From: Paragordius varius
Taxonomy: Eukaryota; Animalia; Nematomorpha
DNA length: 64,000 bases
Direction of reading: 5' to 3'
NCBI GenBank assembly: GCA_964247055.1
Contig: OZ176052.1
Location: 3,968,001 to 4,032,000, forward strand
The notes beneath the pieces are model-generated. The model had not been told where the DNA came from, ran no database searches, and saw only the letters and a list, made by a program, of their open reading frames with translations. This document shows positions 174-51,056 of the stretch, in pieces (position 1 is the first letter of the stretch; every line of letters begins with the position of its first letter). Both the position numbers and the translations under genes were made by a program.

Positions 174-1528
174 CGCAAAGAAAAAAATCCAAACATACAA
201 TTAATTAAAGTTAATGTGGAACCTAAAAACTCAATTCCAACCAGAAAAATGGAATTACTTCGATACTTTCAAAGGTAATAAAACTATCGTCCATACACTT
301 TTATTTGAAATCCTAATAACGGTTAATTTTTTTTAGTTTTGCCAACAATATCACGTACAATTGTCAACATATGAAACGGATAGGTCATGAGGGAAACGGT
401 GGTTGGAATATGTGTTTGGATGGAAAATTCGCTCTTAAAAAACCGTGCATCGTTTACTCATTTGGGTATTAATTGTACAGTGTATTCTCATAAATTGTTT
501 ACCTCTATTCGTATTTTATGCTTATATTTTTGTTACCCGTTAAAAAATTAAAATATATTAAAAGAATTGATTTATTTACCCTTAAGGATATTAAAAATAA
601 AAAGTAAATTTCTTTATTACCAAGGACTTTCCCGATATTTCTTGTTATTTATTTATATAACTAAAAACAAGGGTAGGAAGTGATTGGTCTTTTGATACTT
701 CAGTATCCAATATGTTTGGATGCGAAAACCATGCTTTTGATCCCACAGTCGCTTTCAAGGGAAAAATGCTGAGTAAGGGTGTCTATTTTCACCCATGGGG
801 TATAAAAGCAAAGGACGAAACTTCCTCAAGTGGTCAGGTATAAATAAATTTTTTACACTTATAATTATATGAACAAATGATTGTCGGAAAAATATAAGTA
901 CAAAAACAGATTTTAGCACTGTTTTTTTAATTGTATAAAAAATGTTGTATCAACAATTCAAAAATTTAGAGGGGGTTAAAAATCGATGAGATTTTACAAA
1001 ACTGATATAATTTAAAGTAAAAACGTTTGATTATTAAAAAAATTGACATATAGTAATTAAAAATTAAATGTCCAATAACTTCTAATTACTTTAATTTCAA
1101 ATTTTTCAGGAGTTATTAATCCTGTTTGTATCCATTTGTAAAATCAGGTTTATTTATCCCTTCCCTCAATAATGCAACGCTTGGGTCATCAAACTACATC
1201 ATCTATACCCAATACTGCTAAGAAATCCGAAGAAAAACTAATAGATTTCCTAAAAATCGATATTGAAACTTGGGAATGGGAATCATTAGATGCACTAGCA
1301 AATTCAGATTTCCTTTCACGCCATGTGAAACAATTGGTTGGGGAATTTCATTATTATGGTATTGTACCACTGACCTTTATGAAACGAGTCCATCAAAAAC
1401 TTGTGGAACAAGGTTTTAAACTCTACTTTGCCCGTGCCAATCCGGGCTGTAAAATTAATCAGATCGGCGTTTTCCTACATTTCTATTGCTATGAATTGCA
1501 TTTTATTAACAAACGTTTTATGGAGTAG
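174..1528 (+). CDS. METTL24: Methyltransferase-like 24 family (Methyltransf_22) protein, 3' exons; 5' end lies outside the window
   Basis: Exons ~174-274, 337-465, 672-837, 1148-1528 join in frame through GT-AG junctions. They give ...MELLRYFQSFANNITYNCQHMKRIGHEGNGGWNMCLDG...CIVYSFGVGSDWSFD...CENHAFDPT...YLSLPSIMQRLGH...IDFLKIDIETWEWESL...KQLVGEFH...CYELHFIN*. These are the family motifs (GDGGW-x-C, VYSFG, FDPT, LKIDIE, QL-x2-EFH). The first exon boundary is uncertain, and the symbol is a family-level call. Confidence 0.85.
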
Positions 1529-3861
1529 TAAAGCATTAATTTTATGTAAAAATGTAAATACTTGCAAAATCCAAATTTATCATGGGTGCTAATTATGTCA
1601 ATAAATATATTGTTATTATATAACCATTTTTGATCCAATGCAGGCCCCTGGCCATATAAATTATTTAAGCCTTGCAAATTTACCATCGATCTCGCCTAGT
1701 TTTTAGCTATCTGAACCTTTTTGGGTAAATTTTTAAGCCTAAACCTCATATTACTTTCAAACCCGATTTTCTATATAAAGAAGGCAATTTTTAATTTATG
1801 AAAATTGATTAAGTTTAGCACCATTTTTGATTTAATCACAACAGAAAAAAAATCCTAATTTTTATTCACACCATGAAAATTATGTAATTACTTGCGAAAA
1901 TCTAAAAACATCCTTCTATTCAAGGGTATATATATTAGAACAATGGTGAATCAAAACATGGTTCGAAAAGATTAAGGGTAAATTTAAATGGGTGAAGGAT
2001 TGATATATTAGGTATTTGTTTAAATATTCTGGAGTATTAGTTTTTAAGGTGGAGTTAATAGGCTTATCCGAAAAAATTCGGGGTTAAATGAAAAATGGAA
2101 AAAATATAAACCAACTAGCCGATTCTGGGTATTTTGGATAAATAATTATAAAGCATAAAAAATTAAAACTTATTGTGGGCTTACTGAGTTATCTATAAAA
2201 TTTTATCAAAATTTCAATACTTCACCCCCAAATTAATATATATATAGTTTAAATTTATGTTACACCCATTGATTTGTGAGAAAAGTAATTGCTTTCTAAA
2301 AAAACTTTGATTTTGGATAGGAGCCAAATATTGGGATTCGGATTTTATTTTTCGTCCTATAATTTAATACACAAATCATGCCTAAAACAATGAAAATTAT
2401 AAAAAGGCTATTTAATTTTCATTCAAAAGCATAACAAGGGATATACCTCCCTGCTTTGATGTTCAATCAAATATAAATTAAGTTGGGAAGTTGATACAAT
2501 TTTCATATTTTACCCCATTGACATTAAAAAAACTAATGAAATTATCATTTAACTTTGCCATTAAGCTAATTTTATAAGTACATAATCTTTTAATCCCGTT
2601 TCGACTAATGGAAAATAAGTCAATCTTTCACTTACAAAACTCCCTTAGTTTTTACATATTTAATTAATTTTGAAAATATAAAAATCGCATTAAAATACAA
2701 TTAAAACCGTCTTTCTCAAAAGGGGATATTTGTCAAATTTAATTTGAATAATGGCAGAATGGTACTCAAAATTATTTAATTTTATTATTTTTAAAGGTGT
2801 CATAACGCTGATAACTATGTATATTTTCCACAATCGAGGTCATTGCTATATATTTACTTTAATTATATGAAATTATTTGCGGCAAATCTCAAAATTATTG
2901 CTAAAAATGTTGTTTAGTGAAAAATCATATTTCAGGTAAATATCTCGCAAGTCTTTTATTATTTTATAATATATAATTTAATTTACGTTGCCTATTCACA
3001 CTAACCATATACTAATAAAATAAATACATATACTTTAAGGTTGAATCGAAAACTTGATATTGAAACAGCAATGAAGCGACAACCTAAAGTAAATATTTAT
3101 AAAGATCAAACACGGATATGAGGCGTTTGTTATCATTATATGAAAACTAAATGAATAAACTGGTTGAATATATTTCTTAAACAATTATTACCAAATGAGT
3201 TTTAGAGTTTAAGTTTAGATATATGGCGATAAATATAAAATGAAATGTAATCAAAGCTTTAAAAATAAATAATAATCTGGTCGAATTTAGATTAAAAAAA
3301 GCTACGTCTACTATTTTCAAAAATAGTGTTATCAATAAGGTATATTTATATAAAAAAAAATATATTATGGTCTGTTTACAAGAATAATTATGTATAATAC
3401 AATTTATTTATATATAATTACACGCGATTAGTATAAATAAGGTGGTGGTGATACTAATCAAACAAACATTGATTGCAATTAAACCGTTTTTTATAAATTA
3501 TGCGTTAAAATTATACTATAGTAATTTTATTGCCCCCAAAAAATAACCTATATAATAAAAATATATCTTAAACTTTGGGTAAATAATAAGCGGTGGCTCC
3601 ATATAATAAATAGTGTATATTAAGCAAAATGCCAAGATGTAGTTTGGTTATAATATATACAAGTCATCTTAAAATAGTACACGGTGATATGGTTCATTAT
3701 TTTTAAAAATTTAAGTGATTACTGTAAATATTACGCAATGTTGTCAATTTAAATACTAAAAGAGCGAATAAATGTATTCAGCGCATTAAAAATTATATTA
3801 ATTTAATAATATTAGTATTAGGCATCTTTTAATGCCTATACAAAATTTCTATCAGTAAAGT

Positions 3862-5754
3862 TCAAACATTTAGTTTGGAATGGTCCGTGTCACCAAGTTT
3901 ATCATATAAAAGTTGTTGATGTTGACTAATAGATATATCACTCGGTTCACTTTTGGAGACAAAAATGGATGTTAACCTTCGTCGAATAATTTTTCGTTGG
4001 AAAGTTAACATGCGCATCCATGATCTCCAAAGGTGCGCCAATTTGTGTTCTAATGATTCACCCGTGGTATAGGGCAATCTTCCAGATCCAATAAAGCCAT
4101 TTTGTGTACCTTCGCCTAGCCCTACAATATTTGCTTTATTCTGACTCGCTTTTCGACGGGCACGGGATGAAAGCTTAATTTTGGCAAAAAGAGCAGCGAA
4201 GACAAGCAAAATCCCACTTAGGCCTAATGCATTAATTTTGTGTCCATAAACAAAACATGAAAGAAGAACGGCAAAACCTTGTCTGATAGTCATGGCTGTA
4301 ATGAATGTTACAGCCCCAAATGCAGATATGGTTGTAAAGATAAATATTTGGCCCAATGCTGAACATAACGAAAGTGTCATTAAATCAAGGAGAAAAGCGG
4401 ATTCATGCGTACGTGCAAAATTAATTGAATACCCTAAACCGGACATACCTTCCCCCTTTGTATGCCTTAAAGCTAAAGCAATCGCAGTGAAAATGGAAGA
4501 GAATAAATTGACGTAACACATCATATCCCACGAAGATATAATTTTTATTTCACGTGATTGACTATTGTAGCGTTCAAACAGTTCGGATTGCCAATTGGAG
4601 GTAAAACTGTCAAAAATGACATAACCTGAAAGTATTAAAATTCCGCAAAAAGTAGTCCAAGAAAACCAATTGGTGGATGGAAGAGCGGTAAAATATGGAG
4701 ATCGTTTGACTCTTAACAAATGAGGCAATTGAGTATTGTTGTTTTCAATGTGAGTATTTTCCAAATTCGGTAACGTAAAAGAGTGTATATTTCGTTTAAT
4801 CGCTGAGGGAAATTTAGGTTGCAATATTTCTTTGTCAATTATTGGAATATCATTCAAATTAAAAATTTTAGTTATAGCTAAAATATGGTGATGATCAGGT
4901 TTATCTGTTGTTTGATCTTTTCTTGATATTAGAAACGCAGCTATACCCAAAGAAACAAAAGCAGCACAAATATATTCATGCGGCGCATATCGTTTTGACT
5001 TTTTGGATAATAATTTTCCAATCACCATAACTGGTATAATTTTACCAGATTTAAACAAAACTTGAGTTGGGAACGATACGTATTTCAAAGCTTCATACTG
5101 GCACCAACTGCTAAGAATGTTAGACAAAGATGCAAAACTAAAACGGTAAAGAGCTGGATACGTAACATGGGATTTTACTTCGGATAAATGGGTTGTAGAT
5201 ATCGATATACGTCTTTTATAGCGAATCAGAGAGCGCGTTATGATCCATAAACCGGCAAGAAAAAAACCGGATAATTTATTTGTAAATACTAAAAATTGAC
5301 TATCATCAAATTTATCCATACCATAGGGTATTTTAATTCTTTGGTAAGGGCGAGTAATAATTTTTTCCTGCACTAATCCCCATGTAAGAAAAACTAACTG
5401 TAATCCCAAAAAGCAAAATATTAACGTTGGATAATATCTTTTGTCTTTTGGGGTGATGTGAGTGGAAACTGATTTGACAGAAGCTTCTTCTGATTTATTA
5501 ATTAAACTTTCTTGATCATCATAATTTTGAATGCCTGTGTGACGAAATTTTGTAAAAGATTTAATAACAGTGGTAAAATCGACAGGTTTGTGATCTAAGG
5601 CAAATATTTTTAAAAGACATGGTGCAGATTCGGGATTTTTTCGATATTTCCGTTTCACGCAATATATTAGAAAAGCAGAAGGTATGAGTATTGTCCCATA
5701 ACACAATATATTTATAATAAAATCCGAATGAAATAATTTGAAGGAATCTGCCAT
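3862..5754 (-). CDS. SLC35B2: PAPS transporter 1 (SLC35B2/slalom-like), single-exon ORF with ~85-aa loop insertion and C-terminal extension
   Basis: Uninterrupted ORF; first ATG at 5754 (the track starts on an upstream TTG). Family motifs: GLQLVFLTWGLVQEKIITRPY, DSQFLVFTNK, SFASLSNILSSWCQYEALKYVSFPTQVLFKSGKIIPVM, GYVIFDSFTSNWQSELF, SALGQIFIFTTISAFG, TIRQGFAVLLSCFVYGH. The N-terminal hydrophobic segment followed by KRK is typical of B2 rather than B1/B3. Confidence 0.92.
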   Translation of the reverse strand: MADSFKLFHSDFIINILCYGTILIPSAFLIYCVKRKYRKNPESAPCLLKIFALDHKPVDFTTVIKSFTKFRHTGIQNYDDQESLINKSEEASVKSVSTHITPKDKRYYPTLIFCFLGLQLVFLTWGLVQEKIITRPYQRIKIPYGMDKFDDSQFLVFTNKLSGFFLAGLWIITRSLIRYKRRISISTTHLSEVKSHVTYPALYRFSFASLSNILSSWCQYEALKYVSFPTQVLFKSGKIIPVMVIGKLLSKKSKRYAPHEYICAAFVSLGIAAFLISRKDQTTDKPDHHHILAITKIFNLNDIPIIDKEILQPKFPSAIKRNIHSFTLPNLENTHIENNNTQLPHLLRVKRSPYFTALPSTNWFSWTTFCGILILSGYVIFDSFTSNWQSELFERYNSQSREIKIISSWDMMCYVNLFSSIFTAIALALRHTKGEGMSGLGYSINFARTHESAFLLDLMTLSLCSALGQIFIFTTISAFGAVTFITAMTIRQGFAVLLSCFVYGHKINALGLSGILLVFAALFAKIKLSSRARRKASQNKANIVGLGEGTQNGFIGSGRLPYTTGESLEHKLAHLWRSWMRMLTFQRKIIRRRLTSIFVSKSEPSDISISQHQQLLYDKLGDTDHSKLNV

Positions 5755-6547
5755 CAAAAATAAAGCATGTTTATCAGGAATGTATATGATGTTGTGCGTA
5801 TCAGTCCATAAAATATTTTTTAAATTTTTGCATGGAAAAAATATATAGGATATTGTAACTTATTTTGCTTATTAATTTAATTAAATTAATGCCTCACTTT
5901 TTCATAAAAAGTGCAAATATAAAATAACGATTTATGTAGTGGATTTTATTTATTAATATAATTTAAGGTAAAAACTTTTGACGACTTGTACCTCAAATAG
6001 TTGAAATTATCTTGTTAGGTAATCTAATTAAAATACTTTGCTTAATTTAGGGGGTGTCTATTTCGGGGTCAAAATCCGAGGACCTAAACTTTGTATTAAG
6101 TTTTACAATACAGTATTTTAATTGCCTAGATAGAATCATGCAGTTTTATATGTTTCGGACCTAGAATAATAAATTATTAGAAAGCATTAATCTTAAAAAA
6201 CAGCTTTGAAGTTGTTGAATTATACCGAAATCAAAAACATAGTTGACACTTGCTTATTTTGTTTGCAGACCATTGCCTCTATTTGTCACATTTAAGATAT
6301 TGAGATAGCTACGAAACCCGATTGATATCCGCTGATTAAAAAAATAATAAAAATAAAATCCAGAATGTATTTGAAAGCTTTAGGTTAATTATTTACAATA
6401 CACAGTGTTCACAAAAAATAAGTTGATGATATAAGTATTCAGATTAAAAATGCAATCTTTAGTCTTTCAGACACATTGTTATAAAACATTTCTAAAAAAT
6501 CATTATTTCAAACTTCGTCATCATATTTCATTTAATCAGTAATATAA

Positions 6548-14360: not shown

Positions 14361-15539
14361 TGATTTATAAATTTGGTAATTTTTAAAACACTGACTGATA
14401 TGCTTATTTTAAACATTATAATGTTATAAAATTATATTTTACTGTTATCAAAAATAAATTCCCCATTAATTATTTTTATCATACAGTTAGTTATATCATA
14501 AAATGGCCTTAAGCGAAATATAAATATTTATTTTAATTAATGAAATAACGATGGTTGTACACACGGCTTAGGATAATGATATAATGAATACATTTTCCCC
14601 CCAGCAGAACCCGTAAGAAATGATATTATCGCATCTTGATCTTTCTACAAGATGATGGCATAAAAACATCCATCATGTTTATAACTCATCACAAAAGAAT
14701 TATTGAAATTGTGAGGATACCAAAGCTTATAGGTAAATTAAATTAACACCATAAAAAATATTGAGGAGAAAACTAAAATAAAGTTTTTAATTTGCCAAGA
14801 TTAGCTTGGGATCCTAGAAATTTAAATTATAATTCTATTTTGCTTGAAACATGTTAAATAGCTGACATGACCTGGTCTTACAGTGCGCAGAAAAATTCAG
14901 GAAAGGCGTAAAAAAATCTTGCGACCCCTTCATATATTTACCAAAAAAATTACATATTTACTAGCTAAATTTAATTTATTTTTGTTAATGATTGACAGGA
15001 TATTAAAGTAGTTTTCAAGATTCTTAACATTATTAATAATAACAAAACTGAGGTTTATTTTTCCAAAGTTCTTTTTCATTTAGAAATCATGATACATTTT
15101 ATATTGAGATAAAAATAAATAATATCAGTTTAGAGTCACTTTTTGTTTAAAGGGTAATGACTTAAGATGTATCATGACTTCCAGGGACACTGTTGAAAAA
15201 ATGCCCAGTTTAGGAATTCGAACTCTGGCACCCTAAAAAGTTTGGTGTACAATATCACCCCTTGATGAATAATATATTTTTACTTATTCACACATGTCAT
15301 GTTGGATAAACATTTACTTTTGGTTTGCCTCTAAATAAGTAATATAAAGTATTTTTGAATAAATCTTTTATTAGATTTCGGTTCAGTAATGTTATATAAG
15401 TTCTAACTTTTATGGTTTCAATTTATTCCATATTTTTTAAATTTTGAATTTTAAACAAGCCTAGGGTATCTAACTACCTCATTTAAAAATGAAAGACTGA
15501 AAAAAATGCGTTGTATCCAAGTGTTCGCAAAAATGCGGA

Positions 15540-16320: not shown

Positions 16321-16800
16321 TTGTGTATACTGAGCTTTAAGAAAATGTTCGCAAATGTTGGCTATCTGATATGGAGCACTTTTCATAAGTATAAATAAAT
16401 TTCTTAAATCACTAGTAATAAACCAAAAGTACGATGATATCACATCCTCATAATATATATAAATATATCTATATATATTTCATCAAAATGTTTTTTTTGG
16501 AAACGGGATGAGACAGCGTCGTTATAATAATTAAATGCAGCGGAATACAATAGATTTGTAAGCTATCTAAATTTAAAACCCTTATATAACATATTTACTT
16601 GCTAATATTTTAACAAAATAATATATAGTGAATAATTCTATACGAAGTTTGGCAAATACCAATAATTTTATACTATATATGTCCCCAGTAAGCCCATTGA
16701 ATTTTTAATATAAATATAATTTATTTAAACATTATAAATATTTTATTGCTCACTTACCGTTTTATGTTCGTTCATTGAAAACACATGCATTTTTTTTAAA

Positions 16801-19800
16801 ATGACAGAAGCGGAGAAAACTTTAAATAATTTGCTGGGCGATGATTTGGGTAAAATTGGATCGGAATCAAAAGAGAAGCTTAAAAACTTTATAGAAATTA
16901 ATTCATTATATAATGAAGGCGTTAATGAACAGTTGGAAAAAATTAAATATGATTATGGTAGTTCAATTTAATTGTGTAGATCATCGCCTTTTTTTGAGCG
17001 AAAATAAGTACAAAGAATTACTAGCAGAATACAATACATCCAACCAAACAATGTACAATTTACAGAAAGAAATTTGTTCTGTTGGTAAATTTTGATTTTT
17101 ATTTATAAGAAAACAACCAAAACTTTTTAAAAGATGAATTAAATACTGTTAAAAATCAAGCGGAAGAATCTCTTACTGAAAAAGTTTTTTTATAATATAT
17201 TTTAGAATCAATATATGAACAAGGTTTTATTGCTTGAATATGATATTGTTACACTTAAAACACTTTGTTCTGACAAGGATAAACTTATTGATTCGATTCA
17301 AAGTATATATTATTTATAAGTTTTTTAGATGACAATGCACTAATGGCCTCAAAAATTGATACTTTGCTTAAAAATAAAAAACAAACGCAATTAGAATTGG
17401 ATGAGAAAGCTCAGCAATATTTATTTGATCAAGTTTTTTATATAGATTTTTGGATTATTTTTCATAAGGTTAGGTGGATCAAGTTATATTATATTTTATA
17501 AAATGCCCTCCTATCTATTGTATCAACAACGTTAAGGTTTTTAATGGAATATAAAAAAATGATTGTTTTTTTATAGGTGCAAAATTCTTTATAGATTTTG
17601 CTATGAGAGTTACTAATTTTATGTACGTACCAACACTTTTAACACTTGAATACAACACATTAATTTCAGTCCTTTGATCAATTGGGGTAGTTGGATACCA
17701 CAGGCCTGTTTAAAATTAAATACTTTAAAAAATGGAAGGAATTAAAACCATGGCAAAAATTTGCACTTATATAACATTTATGAAGTGAGATATAGAAAAA
17801 AATTCATTCAAAAAAACTTGATTTTATGTATTTTAAGGTAAACCCCAGGGGTAAAAATTTAAACAATTTGACATGTTATCACCTAAATTTAAAACAATTT
17901 AAAATAAACCACTTTTTCTGTTTCTATCAATGGATGTGATTTAAATAAAAAATTAGCTTTAATTTTAGCTTCAAAATTAAATAAACACGATATTTTGCAA
18001 AAATGTTGCAATATAAAAATGGCGTCGAATTTAGATATTTCGGCTTATTATAATTTTTGACACGATAGATGCATAAATAGAAATTGGAACCGTTTCTTTC
18101 ATTAGTTTTTTAAGAAAATTATTTTGAATATATCTGGGGCATTTAGACCCAATTTGAATCGAAGTGTTGAATTCGGTTTATTAAAAGTTTTGTATTATTT
18201 AATTGGTTATGGCCCAAATTTTAAAATAACTAAAGATTAAAGAAATATTGTTTTATGCCTGCATCTAACTTGTACCACTTGTTATTGTTAACGTGTTTGT
18301 TTTAAGAAATACATTTTAATCGTTGCATTTTAGAAGCCTTATTGGACCCTTTTTTCGATAGCTTTTTGTAAATATCCCTACACCACATCTTTGATGTATG
18401 TACAAAGGAATCTCTATTATTTTATTATAATTTTTACCTTTTATAATAAAGCACTTTTTTCTTATTAATCATAATTTGCATTTGCGACACAAACTTATTT
18501 TTAGTAAATGAAACAAGGATATCTGAATGATTCATTTTTATCTTTTATCATTATTTTTTATTTTTGTGGGGTTATAATTATTTTTATGGCTAGCTTTATA
18601 ATTAGCTTTATAAATTTGAATATATTATTCATATTAGATTATTTTATTGTTACAGTTTTTGTGTAAAAAATCCGTTTTCATTGATATAAATAGTTGTTCT
18701 TTTCCTTTTTTCTACGCCATGATTATTTTGTAATTTACATAATTTTCACACTATATAGCTAATTGTAATGTAATATTTAGTTGGTTAATATTTTTTAAAA
18801 TTTTTGCCTATATAACTTGTTTTATAGGTAAAATTATTTGATTATAGTTATTCTGTACTGTTATGCCAAATTTAAACCCATATAAACAAAATAGTTTTTT
18901 AATGATTTGCCTCTTTAAATATAGCATGCTTTGGAAGATACCAAATTGAAGTTGACTAATTTGGAAAAGCAGATCGAATTATTTCAAACTGAAATTAAGA
19001 CAAAGGATGTCATGTATGTCAAAGATATGGGAGAAAAGGTATAATATATGCATTTAACATGCCGAAATTTTAAACAGGTAACAGATTGAATTTTACCAAC
19101 AAGTTAGCTTAAATTTTTATTAATGTCATTTTACAATTAATGACTGGATTTTTACATTCATAAACATTGTTTTTTTAGAAGAATATCGCAATGGCAATGA
19201 AAAAATATGTTTTTTTAAAAAAGGCTGAAAATGTTTAAATATTACATTGGTTATTTAAATAGTTCCATTATATATAATATGTATATGCGTACTTAGACTT
19301 ACTAATACTCCAAATTAGTATTAATTTCATATTCTTAATTCTGACATCAGCTTATATATTAATTATCCCAAAGATGTTAATCTCTTAAAGTTATAAATAT
19401 ATAAGATATTGTTTCAATCTTTCGTTTTGGTGATCATTTAATTTTAAATATGTTACATGCTTTTATAACATTTTTCCCTAGATTTCAAAATTGTCCAAAT
19501 TAGAATACAAATTACAAGAGTGTGAAAGCCAAAACACGGCCTTAAATGAAGTCATTAATGATATGCAAGATAAATATAAGAAACTGGAGGAAAAATCATT
19601 ACAAATTGCCGATGAAACTTACCAAGTTTATATGGCATCAATTATAATTTAATAATCAACTTCTTTACTTTTGACTTTTGTTTGCGGATAAAATAAAAAA
19701 TGATATGAGAGTTTTTTATTTATTTTATAATTCGGGTTTAAACTGGTTGTATTGATACATACTATTTACACCTCAAATTTACCTTAAAAAATTCACTCTT

Positions 19801-22800
19801 ATTCAAATTTACCCTAAAAATAAATTTGTTTTTGGGTTAATATAACTCATCATTAATATAAAATTATTCTTTATGACATTTATTATTTGTTCTGTACTGT
19901 GTTAATTTTAAACGAATCATTCTTCAAAAAATATGTAAAAATATGTGGGTAATTTTTAGTTTTTAAAAACACACAATTTATTTTAGGGTGAATTTAAATT
20001 GTTCAAGGGTGAGTTTGAAATGTATATAATATATTTTAACCCCAAATACAGAAACAAAATGAATTGGAACGTGAATTATTTGATACAAGAAACCAACTTC
20101 AAGACTCACAATATAAATGTAGTCGTTTAGAGCAAGCCCATAAACAAGCTATAGAACAATATACAGGTTTAAAGGATTCTTTGCAGGAATTACAAGAAGT
20201 TTTTACGCAAACTCGAACTAGTAACACTCTGATTGAGAGTCAATTGACGCAACTTAAACAAAATCACACTGATGCCATAAACCAAAAGGGTACCTATCCT
20301 CTTTACTAATTAATCTAATAGATTTTAAAACATTAAAACATGATAAAACTATGTTTACTTTTTTGGTGAAATTAGATTAAAAATTTATTTTGTATTTTTA
20401 TTTATAACAAGTGTTTTAATTATTTTTTAAATACAATTGATCACATCAAACTTAATACCTTTAATCTTTATAGTAATAACGATAAATAAAAATACTTTAA
20501 TCCAAATTTAATAATATTGTTTAAAAAGTTATGATATTTATTTTATATTATCCCTTATTTCAATTTCTACCAAAATCATTCGTATTTTTCTTAGAACTTG
20601 TTATAACATCATTGGAACAAAAATTGGATGAAAAAGACACTGAAATATCGCGACTTAAGAAAGTTTTAACTGGCGTTCAAATGGGCGATAATTCCAAAGC
20701 AATTTTATCATCTGCAGAAGGCCAATTAACTAATGAAAGCTTTAATAACGTCCCTGTAACTCAAGAAGCTGACACAAGTGGAGAAAATGGTATATATATT
20801 CTTTTGATTTAATGATTTGATTTTTGATAACGTTTTATGTTGGGCGGGGGGATTGTGGATTTAGAGTGATTTAAAATTTATAGTTAATTGAATAATATAT
20901 TTAATTTGGAGATAATTTTTTTTATTGAATTGTTAAAGATTTACATAGAAAAATATTTGTGCATAAGCTTTATACTGCCAAATATATTTTATGGTATAAT
21001 TGCTATTAAACTTAAAATTGAATATAATTTGGCGCTAAAATTATAATTTGATTTTTGTATCTTTCGTTGAAATCGAATTATTATATCAAAACTTAAGATA
21101 AAAAGCTTTATAATGTAATAAATATATTTGATGTTAATACAAATAGTTATACTATGTAATAAATTTCTGATTTTCTCAATCATATATTAATTTCAAATTT
21201 GCTAAGGTAAAAACGCCAATGGTGTCTAAGATCTTATGTACTTTAGGGTTACATATACCCACTGGAATTTTCAATTAAAACGATAAAAAATTTTATTTAA
21301 TCGCATCAGAAACAATTTCTCATATTGGAGAAGCGTCAATAGGAGGTACAAATATGACTTTTTCCGAGCTATATGCCCTTTATATAAGTACAATTAAACA
21401 GCTTGATGTGACACGTGGTGAGAATAAAAAACTTAACATGTCAATGGGATGTATATTGCAAGTAATAATTTTATAGTATATTTTTAAGTTAAAATATGAT
21501 ATATTCATATAAAATTTTTTATGTTCTTTTTGCAAAAATGATAAGGGTGAGTTTCAATACGAAATTTTCCCCTTATTCTTATAATAATTATTTGAAATTT
21601 TCATGATTGGCTTTAAACGCGTATTTATTGCATTTATTATCCGTTTTGGATGATAAATTATACATTCAGCCTGATGATCATAAACCATACCCTCGGAGCG
21701 GATTGATTTATTTAGTATGTATGGTTGGATATCTGCAGAATAGAGGTTAAAATACATAAATAGAGGTGGTTATTAAACTAAATGTTTATTTTAACATTAC
21801 ACATAAGTCGGTTTTGATGTATCAATTACACCAAATTTACCTCCTATGTTTTCATAAATTTGGATAACTCATCATCATACTTCGCTATTTTACATATCAA
21901 ATTAGATCATCTGCCTGTTTTTTTCAGATATTTCTTATAAGTATAATAAATTAAGTGAGAAATAAATTTTGTTTAATCACACATGCACCATAGTTGCGTT
22001 TTTCTAAAGGCTTTTATTGTGTTAATGATTCCGCATTTTTTTGTTTTCTTGATAATTAAGCGAAAAGTGTTGTTGTACTTAAGTATATGTTTGGTAGAAT
22101 AGATATTATTAGATGAGCATTTTGCAGTTGTCGTATTAATGGGGCATTTTTATGGTTTAAGCAATAGAAAGAAAAAAATAGCAAAAAATTAACATGATTA
22201 GGCATCCGTTTCATACGCTGTACATGCTCCTACTATATCCGGTAAGATATTATTTCATAAATTCAACCAAATAAATTTATTATATTTATTGTCTTATCGT
22301 TTGCTTTACAAACCAACTATGATTTTAATTTTAAGGATTTTTCTGATTTTCTATATCCATTTATTTCTTTGTAAATATGATTTAATATTCATCAGTGGGG
22401 ATCCTTATGCGCATTATTTAATATCATATACCCTTATTATATTGTGGCATTCGCATTCTTATCTGAAGTAATGAAAACAGTGCATTATTGCCCATAGCAA
22501 AAAATATTAATAGTTCACCTATGTATCAGTTTTAATCGTTAAAGAATGAATTTGAGTCCAACACCCGCGATGCCTAAATTAAAAATATTAAAAATTTTTC
22601 TTCCCTAGAATTACAACATAATTATCAGCTATTTACGGTATGATTACAATTATACTTCAAAGTTTATTTTTTTACTTTTATGATATATATATATTTTAAT
22701 ATGAATATATCTAATAAAAACATCTATTTTCTTACAAGGATTTTAAAATATTAAAAACGTAAATTTGCTCACACTCTTTTAAAAAAATTGGTTATTATGG

Positions 22801-25800
22801 ATTTATATGCTATTTTAAACCAATTTCTTAATACATTTTTAAAACTTGTTGACCACATATTTAAATACATTTATTTTAAAAACCTGCTGTATTAATTTTA
22901 ACTTGTCTATTAACCATTTTAATACATATTAACCAATAAAATAATTATTTTTGACACCCTCAATTAGGAAATTGAAGAAAAAGGTCCCCTGCTTATCAAA
23001 CAAAATCGAGATTATGGTCGACTCAGCAAAACTGTAGATGCCCTCTCTCAACAACTCGATCAAGCCAGAGAACGCATGCATGGTCTTAAGCTTGAAAATG
23101 TGTCACTTCGCCTTAAATTTGATAAACTGGCACAGTCTTTGACTGAAACTAAGCGAAAAATTTACCTTGTTTCTGCTACTTGTCTCAATGAATTTGATAA
23201 TACTAATATGAATCTTACTGGCGCCAATGTGGATGTAAATAGTACTAAGATTAGTGATGATGAGCATTACTTTAAAAATTCTAAAATAACTGATCAATAC
23301 AAATATGGTTCATTGCTTGAAGGATCTTTTGCTGAGTATATATTACATTTATTATTGTTTTAAAATACAATTGATGGCGATAAACAAATTTGATGTGTAG
23401 TTAGTTTAGAAATGATATCCTCATTAATAATATAAAACATTGTGAAAACATTAACACTCTAAATGAAATCTTTAGATATTTTGCCCGAAATAGTAATTAC
23501 AACTTGAAAGTGTTTTGAATTAGTGTATTTTACTATTTATGAATGCATTCATGACAATGACTGTAAACGCTTATATTACCACCAGTTATATTTTTTTTAA
23601 ACATATGTTATAAACACTTGGTCTAAACTAATACTATATGTAAATAAATAGTTTCAATTTAAATTAAAAAAATTTACTTTATAATTATATTAAATTTTTA
23701 ATAATTGTTTTCAACTTTTTGCAACCATTAAAAAACGATTTAATCGGTTAATTTAGTCGCATCATATATTTTACATTTGTGATAATGACAACTGTTTATA
23801 ACCATTCAATGCATTCATAAACGACCAAAAATTATTATTTTTGACCTGCTAAAGCATAAGCGTACTTAAAATGTTAAAATATAATTATTTTTCTACTCTA
23901 AGAATTGGTTATACAAGATCCATTTAAAATATCTACTATATTTAATTAAAGATTAACCATTTACTATATCATGTAATATATTGTTATATAATATATTTTT
24001 ATCCCATCCATATATAATTTATTGGATTTAGTTTGGAAAAAGATTTCGCTGCGCCATGTAAACGACCACGATCTGATAAAGATGTTTCAATGCTTTCTCA
24101 TACCAGGTTTTTTTAATTATGTCTTAAGTTTTTTAGGCAATATATATTTTAATTGATAAACGCACATATATTAGGTATAAAATTATATACAGTAAAAATA
24201 TAATGATAAACCAAAATGTAAAAGAAGATTATTTTTAAATGATTCTATTATTCAACTCGAATGATTATAATTGTAAAATATATATTTGAACGAATTAAAT
24301 CCTTTATTAACTAATTTTCCCGCTATAATATATTAGGTAAGAAACATTAACTTTTCAAATATAATTATCCATTGTTTTTAATTCCTATGTCTGGTGTAAT
24401 AGTCACTACCGGTTTAACTAAGAGAAGACGTCAGCGAATAGAACGCAGACGATTAATTTTACACAGACCACATTTTGTTCATCTGATATAAACTAAAATC
24501 ACTTGCAACGTTAATTGGTCAAAACATAGCTTCTTATTTTTGTCATTCACTCATTTTGTGACTTGAGGCACGCGTTCTTCTCTTATTTTAGAAAAAGGTT
24601 TTTGAAAATCATCATTTGCGTAGAACCATGTAGGAACTTGCTGTATCAATTGAAGCATGTGAAACATGGCTAATTTTAAAAATAATATTCAGACCACACA
24701 ACTGCGAATACGATAAAATGTATAATAGTTATGATTACAACTCACACTTCATGGTAATTGGCAGAATCATACAAATCACAAAAAATAGCAGACGTCTACG
24801 GCAATGGGAAAGATAACTCGTTATATGGGTTCCACACTATCAATGGATGTCAAATCGAAAATTGCAAAGTGACTGCAAAATCCTGATTCAGCGTCATATT
24901 TGAATCAGATTAATACGTGAGATGAGAAGTGGTATTATTTTGTAACGAATCGAAAAAATGGCTTTCACCCTGCCAAGCCAGTTCAACACTCAGACCGAAT
25001 CGCTTAGGTCAAAAAACCAAAATCTGTGTCAGGCGGGACCAAAGCGGTATTGTTTGCTATAAATTTTTTCAAACCCAGTGAAACTGTTAACACATAAACC
25101 TATCGCCTACAAATTAATAACCGTTCATTAACAAAAAAGTCTAGAATTCGCCAGTCATGACAAAGTGATATTGCTACATAACAATGCTTAGTTTAAATTT
25201 TTTCCATGGAATATTCTTCCGTATCCGCTGAACTCTTCTGACCTTGCGCCATCTGACTTTACCTCTTCACATAATGGGGCACACACTCACAGAGCAGCAC
25301 TTTAATATTTTAAAGACTTGGACAATTACTTGTAGAATGGTTTACCGTAAAAGACAATCATTTATAACACGGCATTCATATATTACTTGATAGATGGGCC
25401 AAAATTTAGAAGCCGATCAAAAATTTTTCATTTTAACTTAGATAACCTGGTAATATTAATTTTTTATCGTTATATTAGTAACTCGGAAAAGATACTCGTT
25501 GCAAAATACGAAAAAGCCTTGAAATACATACTTGATTACGTTACTTTGGAAACGCCCACCTCCCAACAAAATTCTTTTGATAATTGCCAACAAATGACTG
25601 GACAATCATTTTTAACCAATTTAAATAATTCATATAGTAATTTCTCAAATATTAATACGACAATTCCTATGATCAAGGATACAAATGATAATAATATGAG
25701 TTTAAGCCTTATAGACCCTGAGATTGAATCTCTATATAACTTAGAGAAAAAATTGATAGAAAGCGAAAAATTGGCAACAAGTTTGCGACAAATGGTCGAT

Positions 25801-34800: not shown

Positions 34801-37736
34801 TACACCTCTATCTTACTTATTTTTACAGAAGAAAAAAATTTGCGTTTGGCCTCCCTCAAATCCCAATATGAGGCGCGAATCAATAAAATGAAATCACAAA
34901 TGATGGTAGTAAGTGAACAACAATCAGAACAAAAAAGCTCAATTATTGCTAATGAAAGCGAAATATCAATATCCAAATCACCATTTGTTACAACAAGTGT
35001 CGAGGGTCGTGGCGATATGTCATTTGTCCAATCTACATTATTATCATCGACGATGACAAATGTAGTAGTATCTAATATAGAGCCGTCGTCTATCAATAAT
35101 AAAAATAGCTCAAATTTGGACTTTGAATTGTTGTCCCCAAATCGTTCTGATTCTCTACTGCAACAATTTTTGCCTGTTAAGAGTGAGGTAGTAAAATATA
35201 AAAAAAATTTGATAGAGAATTAATTTTTTTTATCATTAATTCGTTTTTTACGCATACATTATCTATTATTTATTTTAAATAAAAAAAGATATTTTTTTGG
35301 CTGTTTAATTTTATATGGAGTGTACATCCTGATGTAGAAAATTTATACCAATTACAGTTCAAATTTACCCTTCAACAATTTAAATTCACCCTTGAACAAT
35401 TCAAATTCATCCTAAAAAATAAATTATGTGTTTTCGAACTAATATAAATCATTATGAATATGAAACATATATCTTTATGGCATTGTTTTATATTTTTTTA
35501 GTATTGTTTTAATTTAAAACAAAATATTAGTGTTTAAAAATATATTAAAATATAGGCAATTTTTAATCTTTCTATAAACACATAATTTATTTTTAGGGTG
35601 AATTCGAATTGTTCGAGGTTGAATGTGAATTGTGTAAGGGTGAATTCGAATTGTAAATGGTATATTATATAAGTGTACAGTTAGAATACTATATTTGTAT
35701 TTTTTGACTCTTAGCAAATAGGTTTTAATCAAGAATCAACATGTCAACCAATCACTAAGAAGGCTGCTGCCAATGTTAAAGGATTTGTTGTGTCTCCAGC
35801 TTTTACTATATCATCATCCGATGCAAACATAGGTATATTATTTTATATTTAAATTTAATTCGTGTACTATTTTTCCAAATTGTAATGGGCGAAATTTGAT
35901 AATGCTTCTATTTTTAGCCATATTTTGTTGTAGTTTTTCCATAATTTATTTAAGAAAATATTTGGTATTCTCATATATATATATATATATATATATATTT
36001 GTATATATATTTGTGTAATTTTTTCATTATAATTTTTTGGATAGAAATATTTCATAATCTGTAATGATTATTTAAATATATACAATTTAAAACATTTTTT
36101 CCCTTGCTACTGTGAAATAAATTGATTTTTTAATTATTATTTTTTACAGATTTTAAATTCTATTTTACAAAAAGATATGAATTTGATTATTATTGTTTTA
36201 GAAAACGCACCCGAAAGAAATACTGTTGAGGAATCAAGTGTTTATGGAACACCCTTTTGTAATATTAACTCGGTGACAACTAACGTACTCTATTATCAAG
36301 CTTCATCAAGTGATAATCTTTTATTGTTCAATATAATTTAGATATTTTTTAAATATTCTACGACATTAATTTATTTAAAACTATTGACGCCTTTTCATTG
36401 GAATTGTGTAAAATATTCGTAAATTTCTAATTTTGATGAAATTTAAATTTTAAATATCAATTATTTAATCAACTTTTTCAGGTACCATAATTATTCCATA
36501 GCTAACCTAAATATATGTATGTAAATTCAATTATTTATTGAAAAATGTATATTAATCTATCTTCATAAAACAACCTAAATGAGGAATTCTAGATAAAATT
36601 TAATGACAATTTAATTAATAATCTTTTTTTGCTGGACCGTTTTTAGTTTTATTAAATTATAAATATAATATAGAGTAGTTTCAATTAATTTCGTTAAATT
36701 GTACAAAAATATTCATTTATATGATATAGAAAAGTTTAATCTTAATTATAAACATTTTTATAGGTATAACCAGCTCAAATGTAAGCACGAAACCTGCCGT
36801 TAGTATTAAACCATTACTTTTCCCACCAGCGCCGAAAATATCTCAATATTATTTGGGGTCAACTGGAACTTCAAGTTTGCCTGTTTTTAAAGAAACTTGT
36901 ATTGAATGAAAATTTGAAAAAATATCAAAATTTTTGGTTGGTTTATTGAAATACTGTTTTTGGAAAAAATATAATGTAGTCTATTGATGGTATATTTTAT
37001 GGAATCCACTTTTATTATTATAATTATATAATCATTTAAATTATGTTCACAATATATTTGGAATTAAGTATATTCAGCGATAATCGTAATATTTTTTATA
37101 TAAATTCTCGTTTACTACGAGGAAACCTACTTAAACTTAAAAAACCAAATCAAATAATATATTAAATACCTTAAAAATGGAATCAATAAAAGTCCTCCTA
37201 AAAAATGAAAAATAAAATAGTCATTTTTTGCAAAAACATATGAAAAAATTGAAGTTATAAAACAAGTATGTCATCCAAATATATGTGTTTTTACATTTTT
37301 AGTCTGTATAAAAATTAGTTTTTTACTGAAAATAATTTTTTTAGGAACACATACTAGCACAATTGGTATTGCTGCCCCTAATGTACACGCAACAATGTTT
37401 CAATCTCCCATATCTTTTACGCCATTTTCTGTCAACCATACTAACGCGATGAACACAGATTTCGAATCAATCATGTCGGGACAAGGTTCATCCGATATAA
37501 TTGAGCAAAATGAAGGTAGACTTATTGATTATGATTTTTCAATAAATTTTTAATAAAAACTAAGTTTTGTAGAAAAAAATGGTTAGAATTCTACAACCCT
37601 TTTTATTAATTCATGACAACTTAAAACGACAACTAAGGTTATATTATAAAAATCTGAGTAAGATAGGTTAATTTTTATGGAAAAAAATTGCCTGTTTGTT
37701 TTTAATTATTGTGAAATTTTTATATTTTTATCCACT

Positions 37737-37784
<48 letters not shown>

Positions 37785-40700
37785 AATATATACCATTTAC
37801 GGTTCAAATTCACCCTTCAACAATTCAAATTCACCCTAAAAATAAATTATGTGTTTTCGAACTAATATAACTCATTATTAATATAAAATATATCTTTATG
37901 GCAAAAATTATTATTTTTTCAGTATTATTTTAATTTAAAACAAAATTTTATTTTTTAAAAATATATTAAAATATAGGTAATTTTTAATCTTAAAAAACAT
38001 GTTATATATTTGAGGGTGAATCTGAATTGTTTGAGGGTAAATTTGAATTATTTAAGGGTGAATTTGAACTGTAAATGGTATATATATATATATTTAATAT
38101 TTATATACAGGCAATAATTTTCAAGATGTCGGTAGCAATTTTACTCAAAACGCATCTCTCATGAGTAATACAATTTCAACTTCAGATCAAAATGTCATTA
38201 GTTCTGCTTTTGTTAGCCCTGTTCCATCAAGTATGGTTCGCATAAACCCTTATCAGCATAATCAAGGAGTTTCAATACCTTTCACTTCAAATTTAGAGTA
38301 AGTTTTTTTTTGTCTAAATTAATAGATTGTCTATGTTAATGGATGGAAATACATCAAAGTAAATTTACATAAATGTGAAATTTTTGATTACACTATTAAT
38401 ATTTGTCAACAGTAATGATAAAACAAAAAAATGCATTAGAAATGAAATCAAAAAACATATTTTAATAATATTAGGTGGTATTATATAAACTATTAATCAT
38501 TTTCTTTTCATCATCCTTGTTCTTTGATAAAGCTTCGTTGAATATTATCTTTTCTTTAAAACCTATTGTGGGATCCCTGTTAATTTATGCTAAGACATGT
38601 AATCTTCATAGGCCATTTGTCTATTAATTAAAATCATTAATGTAATTTGCTTAAATTATGCGAAAGCTTTATATATATATATATATATCACTTACAAGAT
38701 TTTAATTTGTATATAGCATAGAGAATTTTGAATCCGAAATGCTAACAGATGAAGTCGATGCAAGTTTAGCAGTCAATGGTAAGAATAAATTTAGATTAAC
38801 ACTTTATTTCCTTTTGGGGTGGTTACCCCACAATTTTAAATTTAATTAGTTTATAATATGGATGTTTTGGGCCAAAAATATATATCTATGACCTGGCATA
38901 TTATCTAAAAGTATTGTCAAAAATGAAAAAATTCGCATCTCAAATTTTTACCCCTAATGCTCTCCATTAAATGGCTGATGAAAAATTGGCATATAAATAT
39001 ATTGAAAATTAATAAATGTGTAGATTTTAATTTGACTTATTTCTATTAAGTTATATTTTTAACGGGATTAAACCTCTAAAACAGAAAATCACAATTTAGT
39101 GTTAAAAGAAAATAATTATATTAAAACAACTTATATTATATATATATATATATATATATATTATACCTTAGTTTCAAACGACGGATATTTAACCTTATCA
39201 CCACGTGAGCTATTATCAGCTGAAGATACTTCTACCCAATCGGTATATACCTTTTTAACCTCAATGTTCTTTCTGGAATATTAATTATTATTAAATTTAT
39301 ACAATAATTGAAATATTACTTTAGCTTATTGATTTGGAAAACTCGCAATTTCATACACAACAAGAAGAAAACGAATTTATTGAACAAGAGGAGATTGAAG
39401 AACAACCTGGGCCATCTAGTGCTTATGTGGAACAAAAAAGTATGGAAAAAAATTCTAAAAAAATTTTAAATAATAATTTTTTTAGAGAAACGCATAGGTA
39501 CATTTTGTGAATCAAATGATCATTTTCGATTTCTACATATATGCTTTTATCTATATTCAGGTTTTAGTCAGCAAACTCTCATTCGATTAACACCACGTGC
39601 CAAAGCTGAGATAAATAAAGTTTCAATCACACAAAACGTAAATGAGACCATACCTTTTGATTTTCGTAAGTTTTTATCAATTTTGCAAATATTTTTTCTA
39701 GGAGACATTGATTGAAGGGACTATTTTAATTGCATTTAACGTAATTTATATCGTTGAGCCATACCGATTCGATTATGACTTTATGATATAACATATATTA
39801 CAAAATATATTTTCCTTCCAATATTATAGGGGCCGAAAATATACCCTTCAATTCTAATAATCAGGAGAAATTGTGCGGCGTGGAGGTTTCATCCAATACA
39901 CAAGATAGTACAATAAATGTTAGCCATTCCACAACTACGCTTTCCACCATTCAACCTTATAGTTCGCAACAATATTCGAATTCTGCTGCGTTTTCTTCTA
40001 ATTCATATGTTGTTGGCCCCCTTACCACAACCCTATCTGCAGTGAGTAGTAATTTAACTTCAACAACGCAACAACAAGCGGCATCAACATCATCAACGTC
40101 TACTAATCGCATAAGTTTAGTTTCTGGTCTTTCAATCTATAGTACTCAACATAGCCAATCATTGGCTTCCACTACACTTAATATGCCTTTGAGTGCTTTT
40201 ATAAGTGGTGGTGGTGGTGGACAAGGTACCGCTAATCCTATCAATGCATCACACAGTTTATTATTAACTAATACCAATAATTTTATCAAAATGGGAGGAA
40301 AATTTTCTNNNNNNNNNNNNNNNNNNNNNNNNNNNNNNNNNNNNNNNNNNNNNNNNNNNNNNNNNNNNNNNNNNNNNNNNNNNNNNNNNNNNNNNNNNNN
40401 NNNNNNNNNNNNNNNNNNNNNNNNNNNNNNNNNNNNNNNNNNNNNNNNNNNNNNNNNNNNNNNNNNNNNNNNNNNNNNNNNNNNNNNNNNNNNNNNNNNN
40501 NNNNNNNNTGCAAGTAACCTAATAACATCAGCAATCAATACAACAAATTCTCAAACCTTTATGGCTGAAAAAAAGGATCAATCTATGCCACTGAACTTTA
40601 AGGAACCACCCCTGTCATTGGCTAATTTAACGTTTGCTCAACATTTAAAAATGCGTGCACCTTATCCCAGTGCTTCTAATCCGAATAAAAGGGGAGGAGG

Positions 40701-41479: not shown

Positions 41480-42430
41480 ATTACTACAGGGCTTTACCAG
41501 TTTTTGGTAAAAGTGCACTTTATCGTCTTTGTGTGGTCTACCTAAGCGTCTTCTATCTTTGAGATTGGAATCGCAACTTTAAATTTAACCATTTTTCCAT
41601 GTTCACCATATGTTTCTACCAGCAACCGATGACTTTTAACAGCTTTTTTCTGATGAAATATTGCAAATCTTGCCGCAAATGTTCTTTTTTAGTCACACAA
41701 TACGACATGATTATTGGATGATAAAAATAAGGCGCTAGTTTTTGGCGGGCCATTGTATGTGTTAGTTTTAACACGATCAACATATTCCTCTTTGTTCTTC
41801 AATTCTAATTAGGGTAGTTGGATGTACCATGATTGTTTAAAATTAAATAATTCAAAAAATATGGAAGGTACCGAAGCTATGGCAAAAGTTCGCATTTATA
41901 TAACATTAATTAACCAAAATATAAAAAAAATCAAACATACTTGTTATCTTTTTTAAAGCATCAAGGTAATTAATTTAGTCAACATGACATGTGGGCATTA
42001 GCTAAATTAAAAATACAAAATAAACCACTTCTGCATCTATATATGTTGGATGTGATTTAAATATAAATTTAGCTTTAAAATTAGATAAACACCATATTTT
42101 GCAAAAATGTTTGGAAATAAAAATGGCGTTGAAATAGTTTGGTATGGAACTTTTTTCAAAACTAAATTTTATTTGGAGTCGGCTTACATGTATAATTTTT
42201 ATTAGGACAGAAGCATAAATTTAAATTTGGACCGTTTTTGGTAGTTTTTAAATATCAACTTTATAGTCTGGGTATTTAAATACACCAATTTAAATTGAAG
42301 TGTTAATGTCCGATTAACATAATGCATCTTTTCAAATTAATCGCCTAAGTACTTCCCGCTGACGTCTCATTGTAAAAAAGCATAAAAACGATCATTGCAT
42401 TATAAAGGTAGACCTTGATTCATTTATACC
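41480..42430 (-). mobile_element. Internally deleted mariner (5' part) interrupted by a TTAA-flanked MITE
   Basis: Minus strand 41520-41690 encodes remnants EHLRQ...HQKKAVKSHRLLVETYGEH and ...GRPHKDD (Mos1-type N-terminal HTH region). After the MITE, cgctgacgtctc (~42357) matches the 5' UTR of the 24388 copy (gaagacgtcagcg). Confidence 0.65.
41772..42302. mobile_element. TTAA-flanked (piggyBac-like) MITE
   Basis: ttaa|cacgatcaacatattcc...agggtagttggatgtacc at the left end and ccaatttaaattgaagtg|ttaa at the right; TTAA on both sides. Confidence 0.75.
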
Positions 42431-50300: not shown

Positions 50301-50974
50301 TTTGGCTATTTAAATCGTTTTAGATCCACATTTCCAAAAACGTTTTTTAATAACCGATCACGGTTTTTACAAAGTTTTTTTTAATTTTATTATGTACTGT
50401 ACTTTGTATACATAAATGGTTTTCTGAAAATTCGAATAAATAAATATAATTTATCTATTTGGCCCAAAATATTGAACCATAATTATACTAGTTACAAAGG
50501 AACAAAATCAAACAGAATTTCAGTAATCCCGTATTAAATGCTTACCCGATTTTTCTAATTCTACTTCTCTTAGCCCTTCTAACAGTTGTGGATTTTGAGG
50601 ATCGATTTCAAGTCCCTTTTTGTAAGCATTTTCAGCTTCATCCCATTTTTCGAGAAATGAAAGAGCTGCACCTTTCCGCGAGTACCCCTGAATTGTTTTA
50701 AAAAAGATAAATTGTATGAATATTAATAATACCTTGGGCCAATCCGGTTTTAACTGTATGGTTTTTTCAGAATCTTCTAAAGATTCCTCATAACGAGCAA
50801 GTTTCGCCAACGCAGCTGCGCGATTGCTATATAAGACGTGATTTGATGGATCAATTTTAATAGCTTTAGTATAATAATCATAGGCCTCTTCATAGTTTCC
50901 ATCATTCAATGCTTTATTGCCAAATTCTTTTAATTTATTTGACTCCTAAAAATATAAAAAAAATGTACCTGCAT
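44353..50974 (-). CDS. STIP1: Stress-induced phosphoprotein 1 (Hop/Sti1), TPR1-DP1-TPR2A-TPR2B-DP2
   Basis: Exons 5'->3': 50974-50969 (ATG CAG), 50945-50733, 50687-50546, 49938-49737, 49043-48880, 48579-48494, 48110-47984, 47702-47600, 47531-47411, 47296-47200, 46654-46493, 46025-45922, 45231-45056, 44425-44353. Peptides: [146 protein letters not shown]. Confidence 0.96.
44524..44697. repeat. 174-bp palindromic mini-element (TA|CAG...CTG|TA) in the last STIP1 intron
   Basis: acagtataatggttgctgatttcac..tagtagggcaattcgcaacacaggagtgtatggaaaa pairs with ttttccaacactactgttttgcgaattgccctacta..gtgaataagtaaccatta..atactgt; loop ~40 nt. Confidence 0.75.
48128..48362. mobile_element. CCATTT-family MITE in STIP1 intron
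   Basis: ta|ccatttacatttcaaactcaccctgaattcaaattcaccctaaaa ... ttttagggtgaattcaaattgtaaatgg|tg. Confidence 0.8.
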
Positions 50975-51056
50975 GCTTAATATCGAGAATTTTCAATGGA
51001 TGAACAAAATTATTACTGAATTAGAACTGCTAAGATTGCCTTATCAAACGAGATTT

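Follow-up and report, generated by a model that had tools for sequence, protein, structure and literature searches.

The 5'-end of a long gene on the forward strand of a hairworm genome raises the question of whether an animal can remove introns of less than 30 nt from a transcript that also carries introns exceeding a kilobase. The reading frame starting with the ATG at 16801 shuts four times if the sequence is left unspliced, with every frame of the region being repeatedly closed. A sequence-only reading of the window, which comprises the whole analyzed stretch of 64,000 nucleotides (26.8% G+C, interrupted by a single gap of 200 N), had assigned these breaks to four consecutive segments with GT..AG ends and lengths of 22, 25, 22 and 26 nt. 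The location and the ends of the segments proved to be exact, and the same holds for the lengths and phases assigned to the adjacent exons. Taken as a set of four, the segments are very likely genuine U2-type (GT-AG) spliceosomal introns, as judged from the properties of the sequence described below. The region is composed of the following elements:

exon 1, 16801-16957, forward strand: 157 nt, begins with ATG, phase 1 at its end, codon score +20 bits
mini-intron 1, 16958-16979, forward strand: 22 nt, GT..AG, in-frame stop if kept
exon 2, 16980-17084, forward strand: 105 nt, phase 1 to 1, its sole open frame is the required one
mini-intron 2, 17085-17109, forward strand: 25 nt, GT..AG, 88% A+T
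exon 3, 17110-17183, forward strand: 74 nt, phase 1 to 0, positive codon score (+12.7 bits) confined to the proposed frame
mini-intron 3, 17184-17205, forward strand: 22 nt, GT..AG, 91% A+T
exon 4, 17206-17302, forward strand: 97 nt, phase 0 to 1, positive codon score (+7.5 bits) confined to the proposed frame
mini-intron 4, 17303-17328, forward strand: 26 nt, GT..AG, 88% A+T
exon 5, 17329-17432, forward strand: 104 nt, phase 1 to 0, positive codon score (+17.7 bits) confined to the proposed frame, followed by a GT donor at 17433

Excision of all four segments leaves a continuous sequence of 537 nt, equivalent to 179 codons devoid of stops, which ends at the GT donor at 17433 and in which the phases following the five exons are 1, 1, 0, 1 and 0. 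Upstream of the ATG of exon 1, the frame is closed by a stop at 16735-16737. None of the four mini-introns has a length that is divisible by three, and the retention of any one of them introduces a stop inside the intron itself. Their A+T content ranges from 73 to 91%, compared to 70-76% in the exons. The acceptors are, in order, TAG, AAG, TAG and TAG, and in the printed sequences A residues are found 6-11 nt upstream of each of them. In case of mini-intron 1, a 19-nt version starting from a donor GT at 16961 keeps the frame equally well.

Host gene and genomic context

The sequence downstream of exon 5 shows a very different organization:

intron 5, 17433-18924, forward strand: 1492 nt, GT..AG, with a dispersed repeat of about 530 bp at 17638-18168
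exons 6-8, 18925-19038, 19482-19625 and 20052-20289, forward strand: with intervening introns of 443 and 426 nt, GT..AG
rest of the gene, 20290-40962, forward strand: about 26 more exons, stop after 40959, last exon containing the 200-N gap

The gene was modelled by exon chaining with a penalty applied to each intron, after training on other genes and with exclusion of all sequence of the candidate itself. The resulting model encompasses 34 exons with 6606 coding nucleotides without exons 2-4, and about 6.9 kb if the latter are included, and its introns past 20290 extend over 70-1512 nt, with none shorter than 35 nt. Up to about 35.2 kb, the translated exons have the character of a coiled coil, followed by an S/T/N-rich part and an arginine/glycine-rich end. 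By its size of about 2,300 codons and its layout, this coiled-coil gene is likely to encode the nuclear-basket protein TPR, whose 2,000-2,400 residues form a long coiled coil at the N-terminus and continue into a low-complexity tail at the C-terminus. The identity as TPR had already been proposed from the sequence, and the architecture of the gene fits this proposal, whereas searches with single exons in Pfam, the PDB, the Atlas and with HMMER returned nothing specific. A search of Pfam with 20 single exons found nothing above the cut-off, with a weak match to TPR_MLP1_2 at 20040-20306 remaining below it (E = 0.045). Exon 1 had no match among 1.84 billion representatives in an exhaustive HMMER search, phmmer searches of the PDB with exon 1 and with 22968-23210 did not reveal any TPR or Mlp match, and the Atlas search returned generic coiled-coil clusters only. 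In the same single-exon searches, no orthologue was found that could be aligned across the mini-intron junctions, and a contig search with an exon open reading frame of the TPR candidate and with the PAPS-transporter protein of Gordionus has no matches on record.

The repeat in intron 5 matches eight further stretches distributed over four other loci of the window, with 67-80% identity, and its word depth of 1e5-1e6 compares to a baseline of a few hundred. Because of these repeat copies and this word depth, the earlier description of introns of 1-1.5 kb filled with transposable elements can be considered as fair for this 1492-nt intron. Transposase-like fragments in the intron at 24.3-25.4 kb gave no Pfam match. 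The window is matched by the genome of Gordionus, for which 26.9% G+C and 64% repeats are given in a hairworm genome paper.

A separate observation concerns an intronless open reading frame of a PAPS-transporter at 3865-5757 on the reverse strand, which encodes 631 residues. Its best match is an unnamed 624-residue protein of Gordionus sp. m RMFG-2023 (442 bits, 47% identity), followed by a protein of Ixodes (282 bits), and the unusual length is common to the proteins of the two hairworms. The window thus derives from a nematomorph, and the level of identity indicates that this worm is fairly distant from Gordionus. A myxozoan origin, considered in view of the short introns published for that group, was rejected because the best protein match is to Gordionus and because eIF3d follows its Pfam family over the full length.

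Mini-introns in other genes of the window

Short introns are found in two further genes of the window:

eIF3d intron 1, 54201-54225, forward strand: 25 nt, GT..AG, Pfam eIF-3_zeta profile continuous between positions 39 and 40
eIF3d intron 2, 54272-54310, forward strand: 39 nt, in frame, stop-free
STIP1/HOP intron 1, 50946-50968, reverse strand: 23 nt, GT..AG, after a two-codon first exon (ATGCAG)
STIP1 intron, 50688-50732, reverse strand: 45 nt, in frame

In eIF3d, the match to the Pfam family eIF-3_zeta stops with profile position 39 at base 54200 and restarts with position 40 at 54226, and eight more exons match the family in order, which is thus covered over its whole length. By this continuity of the profile, the predicted 25-nt intron of eIF3d is confirmed by homology. 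The exon following the 23-nt intron of STIP1, a tetratricopeptide-repeat protein according to Pfam, does not contain an ATG of its own. Both genes also have introns of several hundred nucleotides. All six mini-introns of the window occupy the 5'-most intron positions of their genes (intron 1 in eIF3d and STIP1, introns 1-4 in the TPR candidate), and with six of about 50 introns they form a minority rather than the predominant class. The donor is GTA in four of the six and the acceptor TAG in five, the sixth being AAG, numbers that are too small for a sequence logo. The mini-introns of the TPR candidate, STIP1 and eIF3d appear to belong to a discrete 5'-proximal class. No RNA family was found in the window by Rfam.

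Statistical and coding properties

We have searched both strands by dynamic programming for the longest stop-free path that starts from any ATG and makes no more than four GT..AG jumps, each 20-30 nt in length. On the forward strand, the best path in the window is located at the TPR candidate and uses exactly the four proposed introns, so that the restored frame of the sequence-only reading was recovered by a search unbiased towards it. On the reverse strand, only the intronless transporter frame of 631 codons, which does not use any jump, exceeded the mini-intron path. When the 64-kb strand was shuffled 1000 times with preservation of its dinucleotides, the path length of 605 nt was reached in six cases, a result that is significant but not overwhelming and that is on its own only moderately strong.

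The coding character of the exons was quantified by a codon log-likelihood ratio trained on other exons within the window. In the proposed frame, exon 2 scores +5.9 bits, compared to -14.9 and -3.3 bits in the remaining frames, and as in this exon, the positive scores of exons 1, 3, 4 and 5 listed above are accompanied by negative values in the other two frames.

Presence of the segments in independent DNA

The locus was found in four sequencing runs (X1, X2, X3 and X4) from three samples and two studies, all of which are DNA-like, with a depth that is level across exons, introns and upstream DNA and that shows big peaks at repeats. Gap-free contigs cover 16986-17293 in X1, 16989-17542 in X2, 16979-17150 and 17206-17519 in X3, and 16733-17048 and 17019-17175 in X4. 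Mini-intron 1 is crossed without gap by the first of the X4 contigs, mini-intron 2 by contigs of all four runs, mini-intron 3 by those of X1 and X2, and mini-intron 4 by those of X2 and X3. An X4 contig over mini-intron 4 contains two indels somewhere within 17257-17439. Since the segments are carried by DNA contigs of three samples and two studies, they are not assembly errors, which answers the reservation of the sequence-only reading that the breaks might originate from errors in the consensus. Two polymorphisms are listed for the exons. The first, 17247 T>C in exon 4 (X1, X4), affects a third codon position and is synonymous, and the second, 17054 T>A in exon 2, replaces Tyr by Asn; neither of the two causes a frameshift. 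In runs presumed to contain RNA for this species label, sampled words of the locus were absent, as were words of eIF3d.

Alternative explanations

The exon-chaining model, with its penalty for each intron, skips exons 2-4 in favor of a single intron of 371 nt (16958-17328), an arrangement in which exon 1 is joined straight to exon 5 with preservation of the frame, and this solution was therefore subjected to a direct threading test. In this test, the outer splice sites were kept and the 359-nt interior between them was randomized. A stop-free threading by mini-introns was obtained in one of 20,000 shuffles and in none of 592 real windows taken from introns of the gene, and even under much looser rules in only eight of 5000 shuffles and two of the 592 windows. 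If the region were a single intron, or if exons 2-4 were cassette exons that are rarely included, these three exons would owe their open frames to coincidence or would be expressed only on occasion. In light of the threading result and of the fact that each of these exons is coding-like only in the needed frame, we regard this as highly improbable. A different concern is raised by the possibility that ordinary minimal introns of about 40-70 nt, with splice sites lying farther away, span some or even all of the breaks, as exemplified by 16958-17015, 17085-17133, 17184-17223 and 17267-17328, in which case the 22-26-nt solutions would merely maximize the open frame. In-frame and stop-free options of this kind exist at every break (55-70 nt for intron 1, 49 nt with an acceptor at 17133 for intron 2, 40 nt with an acceptor at 17223 for intron 3 and 56-62 nt for intron 4), and introns of comparable size are found in the same window, with 39 nt in eIF3d and 45 nt in STIP1. 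Yet the 105 nt that would become intronic in this way score +7.6 bits as coding sequence (p = 0.004 against intronic windows and 0.037 against open intronic windows) and have an exon-like G+C content, and the distal acceptors are all AAG, whereas the long introns and those of 39-45 nt use TAG or CAG. Moreover, the proximal AG located 25 nt from the donor must be used in eIF3d, and all four minimal solutions fall into a narrow band of 22-26 nt that is common to eIF3d and STIP1. We thus consider longer introns at these positions as unlikely.

The two remaining explanations do not involve splicing. In one of them, the 5'-end would be part of a decaying pseudogene or affected by sequencing errors, with the breaks being true frameshifts or artefacts. 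Nothing specific speaks for it except that the assembly contains a 200-N gap in the last exon of the gene, and it is rendered extremely unlikely by the concordant DNA contigs from three samples, by the exact placement of GT and AG at the borders of each break with sizes confined to a narrow band, and by the listed exon polymorphisms, with one synonymous and one Tyr/Asn exchange and no frameshift. In the other, the segments would be removed by a process unrelated to the spliceosome, such as programmed DNA elimination or a non-canonical excision from RNA. Ciliates eliminate short DNA sequences that are similar in size to the segments described here. However, every DNA contig examined contains the segments, their GT..AG ends match those found at the gene's long introns, and we know of no system for DNA elimination or non-canonical excision at this scale in ecdysozoans, which leaves this explanation with a minimal probability. 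Genuine spliceosomal introns of 22-26 nt thus remain our preferred interpretation of the four breaks.

Relationship to known tiny introns

According to a study of September 2026, introns below 30 bp are among animals known only from myxobolid myxozoans and Dicyema (PMC13644364), and the occurrence of such introns in more lineages was predicted there by Hadjez et al., 2026. The earlier view that sizes in the low 20s are, among animals, limited to dicyemids has thus become outdated with the myxobolid introns reported in 2026 (PMC13644364). The myxobolids Henneguya salminicola, Thelohanellus kitauei and Myxobolus rasmusseni resemble the hairworm in having GT-AG introns of such a size, with 20-27 nt in their case. 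The splice motifs of these myxobolid introns are reduced and hardly extend beyond GTa and AG, and a few A residues that precede the acceptor are regarded as the presumed branch site (PMC13644364). A residues are also found at this location in the hairworm. Short introns adjoin other short introns in the myxobolids, and the authors propose a conventional U2-dependent splicing (PMC13644364). In these fast-evolving parasitic cnidarians, tiny introns constitute the bulk, with median lengths of 22-27 bp (PMC13644364). In contrast, those of the hairworm are, within the window, a minority class at the 5'-ends of genes, located beside introns of 39-45 nt and of 0.4-1.5 kb, in a repeat-rich ecdysozoan genome that encodes well-conserved proteins.

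Dicyema japonicum (cited in PMC13644364, PMC6736024) shares with the hairworm the size range, the GT-AG ends and a weak consensus, but dicyemids have reduced genomes with uniformly short introns, whereas the length distribution in the hairworm is at least bimodal within one gene. A similar size is also found in ciliates, with about 25 nt in Paramecium and 15-16 nt in Stentor (PMC5014332, cited in PMC13644364). As protists with uniformly tiny introns, ciliates are unlike the hairworm.

In Schistosoma and tapeworms, which are parasites with repeat-rich genomes, small introns with a mode of about 30-37 nt are enriched at the 5'-end as part of a bimodal length distribution. The 5' bias and the bimodality are as in the hairworm, but the small class of flatworms is mostly above 30 nt and belongs to another phylum (Spiralia). 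The word 'intron' is absent from two hairworm genome and comparative papers, and none of the papers covered by our literature search joins the terms 'hairworm' and 'short introns'. Compared with these systems, the hairworm appears to be a new lineage for an already known kind of intron, which is distinguished as a 5'-proximal minority class in a repeat-rich genome.

Proposed splicing mechanism

In the mechanism that we envisage, the mini-introns would be recognized by intron definition, with GTA or GTT serving as a short donor and YAG as the acceptor. The A/T-rich stretch located 6-11 nt before the acceptor would provide the branch adenosine, leaving no more than about 11-17 nt between donor and branch, as is the case in dicyemids, myxobolid myxozoans and ciliates. 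It is in this respect from the genomic sequence that we infer the excision of the four segments from RNA, the position of their branch points and the nature of the splicing machinery. Since their lengths are not divisible by three and an in-frame stop is contained in each of them, a transcript retaining such an intron would be truncated and probably degraded. This combination recalls Paramecium, where intron retention is subject to translational surveillance, although the avoidance of multiples of three in four hairworm introns is of no statistical meaning at n = 4.

In their donors and acceptors (GTW... and YAG), the mini-introns look like the long introns that these genes also contain, with equally weak signals in both. 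If anything, these shared signals would favor one ordinary U2-type machinery over a dedicated pathway. The co-occurrence of mini- and long introns in one gene, as put forward in the sequence-only reading, is borne out insofar as the segments behave like GT-AG introns and later introns of the gene reach 0.4-1.5 kb; the modified lariat geometry or dedicated mini-intron pathway that had been derived from it would be pure inference.

Implications

Whether hairworms, independently of dicyemids and myxobolids, form a third lineage of animals in which spliceosomal introns fall below 30 nt and are organized as a discrete 5' class beside kilobase introns laden with repeats, is in our view evenly balanced. 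If true, the miniaturization of introns would be independent of genome compaction, and, if confirmed by RNA, the hairworm would provide the first case in an ecdysozoan and the first in a repeat-rich, non-compact genome. The presence of introns of 22 nt and 1.5 kb in one pre-mRNA would permit a comparison within a single gene, which could be used to define how short a distance from donor to branch is tolerated by the metazoan spliceosome and whether separate factors are needed for such introns. Gene models that bar introns below about 30-40 nt would truncate or break the 5'-ends of hairworm genes and may thus inflate estimates of gene loss. Since such introns are not provided for in common gene finders, the reported loss of universal genes in hairworms and their low BUSCO values could, if our interpretation is correct, in part be an artefact of annotation.

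Position of mini-introns within genes

The six mini-introns (GT-AG segments of 22-26 nt) seen in the window, at 16801-17432, 50946-50974 and 54063-54225, all precede the other introns of their host gene, as intron 1 alone or as introns 1-4, which suggests that they are biased towards the gene 5' end. Later introns of the three genes that carry them range from 39 nt to 1.5 kb. The introns of STIP1/HOP and eIF3d include:

50946-50968, minus strand: STIP1/HOP intron 1, 23 nt, directly after a first exon of two codons
50688-50732, minus strand: further STIP1/HOP intron, 45 nt, in frame and stop-free, separating the PDWPK codons from the GYSRK codons
54201-54225, plus strand: eIF3d intron 1, 25 nt, interrupting the Pfam profile exactly at position 39/40
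54272-54310, plus strand: eIF3d intron 2, 39 nt, in frame and stop-free

Since it preserves the frame and contains no stop codon, the 39-nt intron of eIF3d would escape a simple ORF scan.

Other genes

Two further genes are located in the first part of the window:

371-1591, plus strand: gene encoding a domain of the FkbM type (Methyltransf_21), whose match at E = 1.7e-4 narrowly misses the Pfam cut-off
3865-5757, minus strand: PAPS-transporter ORF (SLC35B2-like), intronless, 631 codons

The 5' part of the former requires at least one intron, and the mini-intron paths proposed by the search in this region look spurious. The PAPS-transporter ORF exceeds the length found in other animals by about 200 residues, a length common only to the protein of the hairworm Gordionus (624 residues).

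Dispersed repeats

Two repeat families are dispersed in the window:

17638-18168: family of ~530 bp; copies at ~15292-15525, 41807-42133, 51054-52764 and 53409-53764, identity 67-80%
19759-20037: second family, ~280 bp, containing internal segments in inverted orientation; other members at 35345-35636, 37785-38047 and 48130-48348

In the DNA runs, the word depth of the first family is 1e5-1e6. It comprises several nested or tandem copies at 51054-52764, and the spacer that separates STIP1 from eIF3d is taken up by a cluster of them. The second is located in introns of STIP1 and of the TPR-like coiled-coil gene, where the copy at 19759-20037 ends only ~15 nt upstream of the acceptor of exon 8. 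The low-complexity last exon of the same gene contains an assembly gap of 200 N at ~40273-40472.

Sequence variation at the TPR-like locus

Contigs of the DNA-like run X4, obtained from a second sample (S3) with the same species label, cover 16494-17439 and diverge from the window by ~2-7% with few indels, a sign of very high heterozygosity or else of a cryptic sister taxon. A pair of sequences of this kind could serve to contrast substitution patterns between exons and mini-introns.
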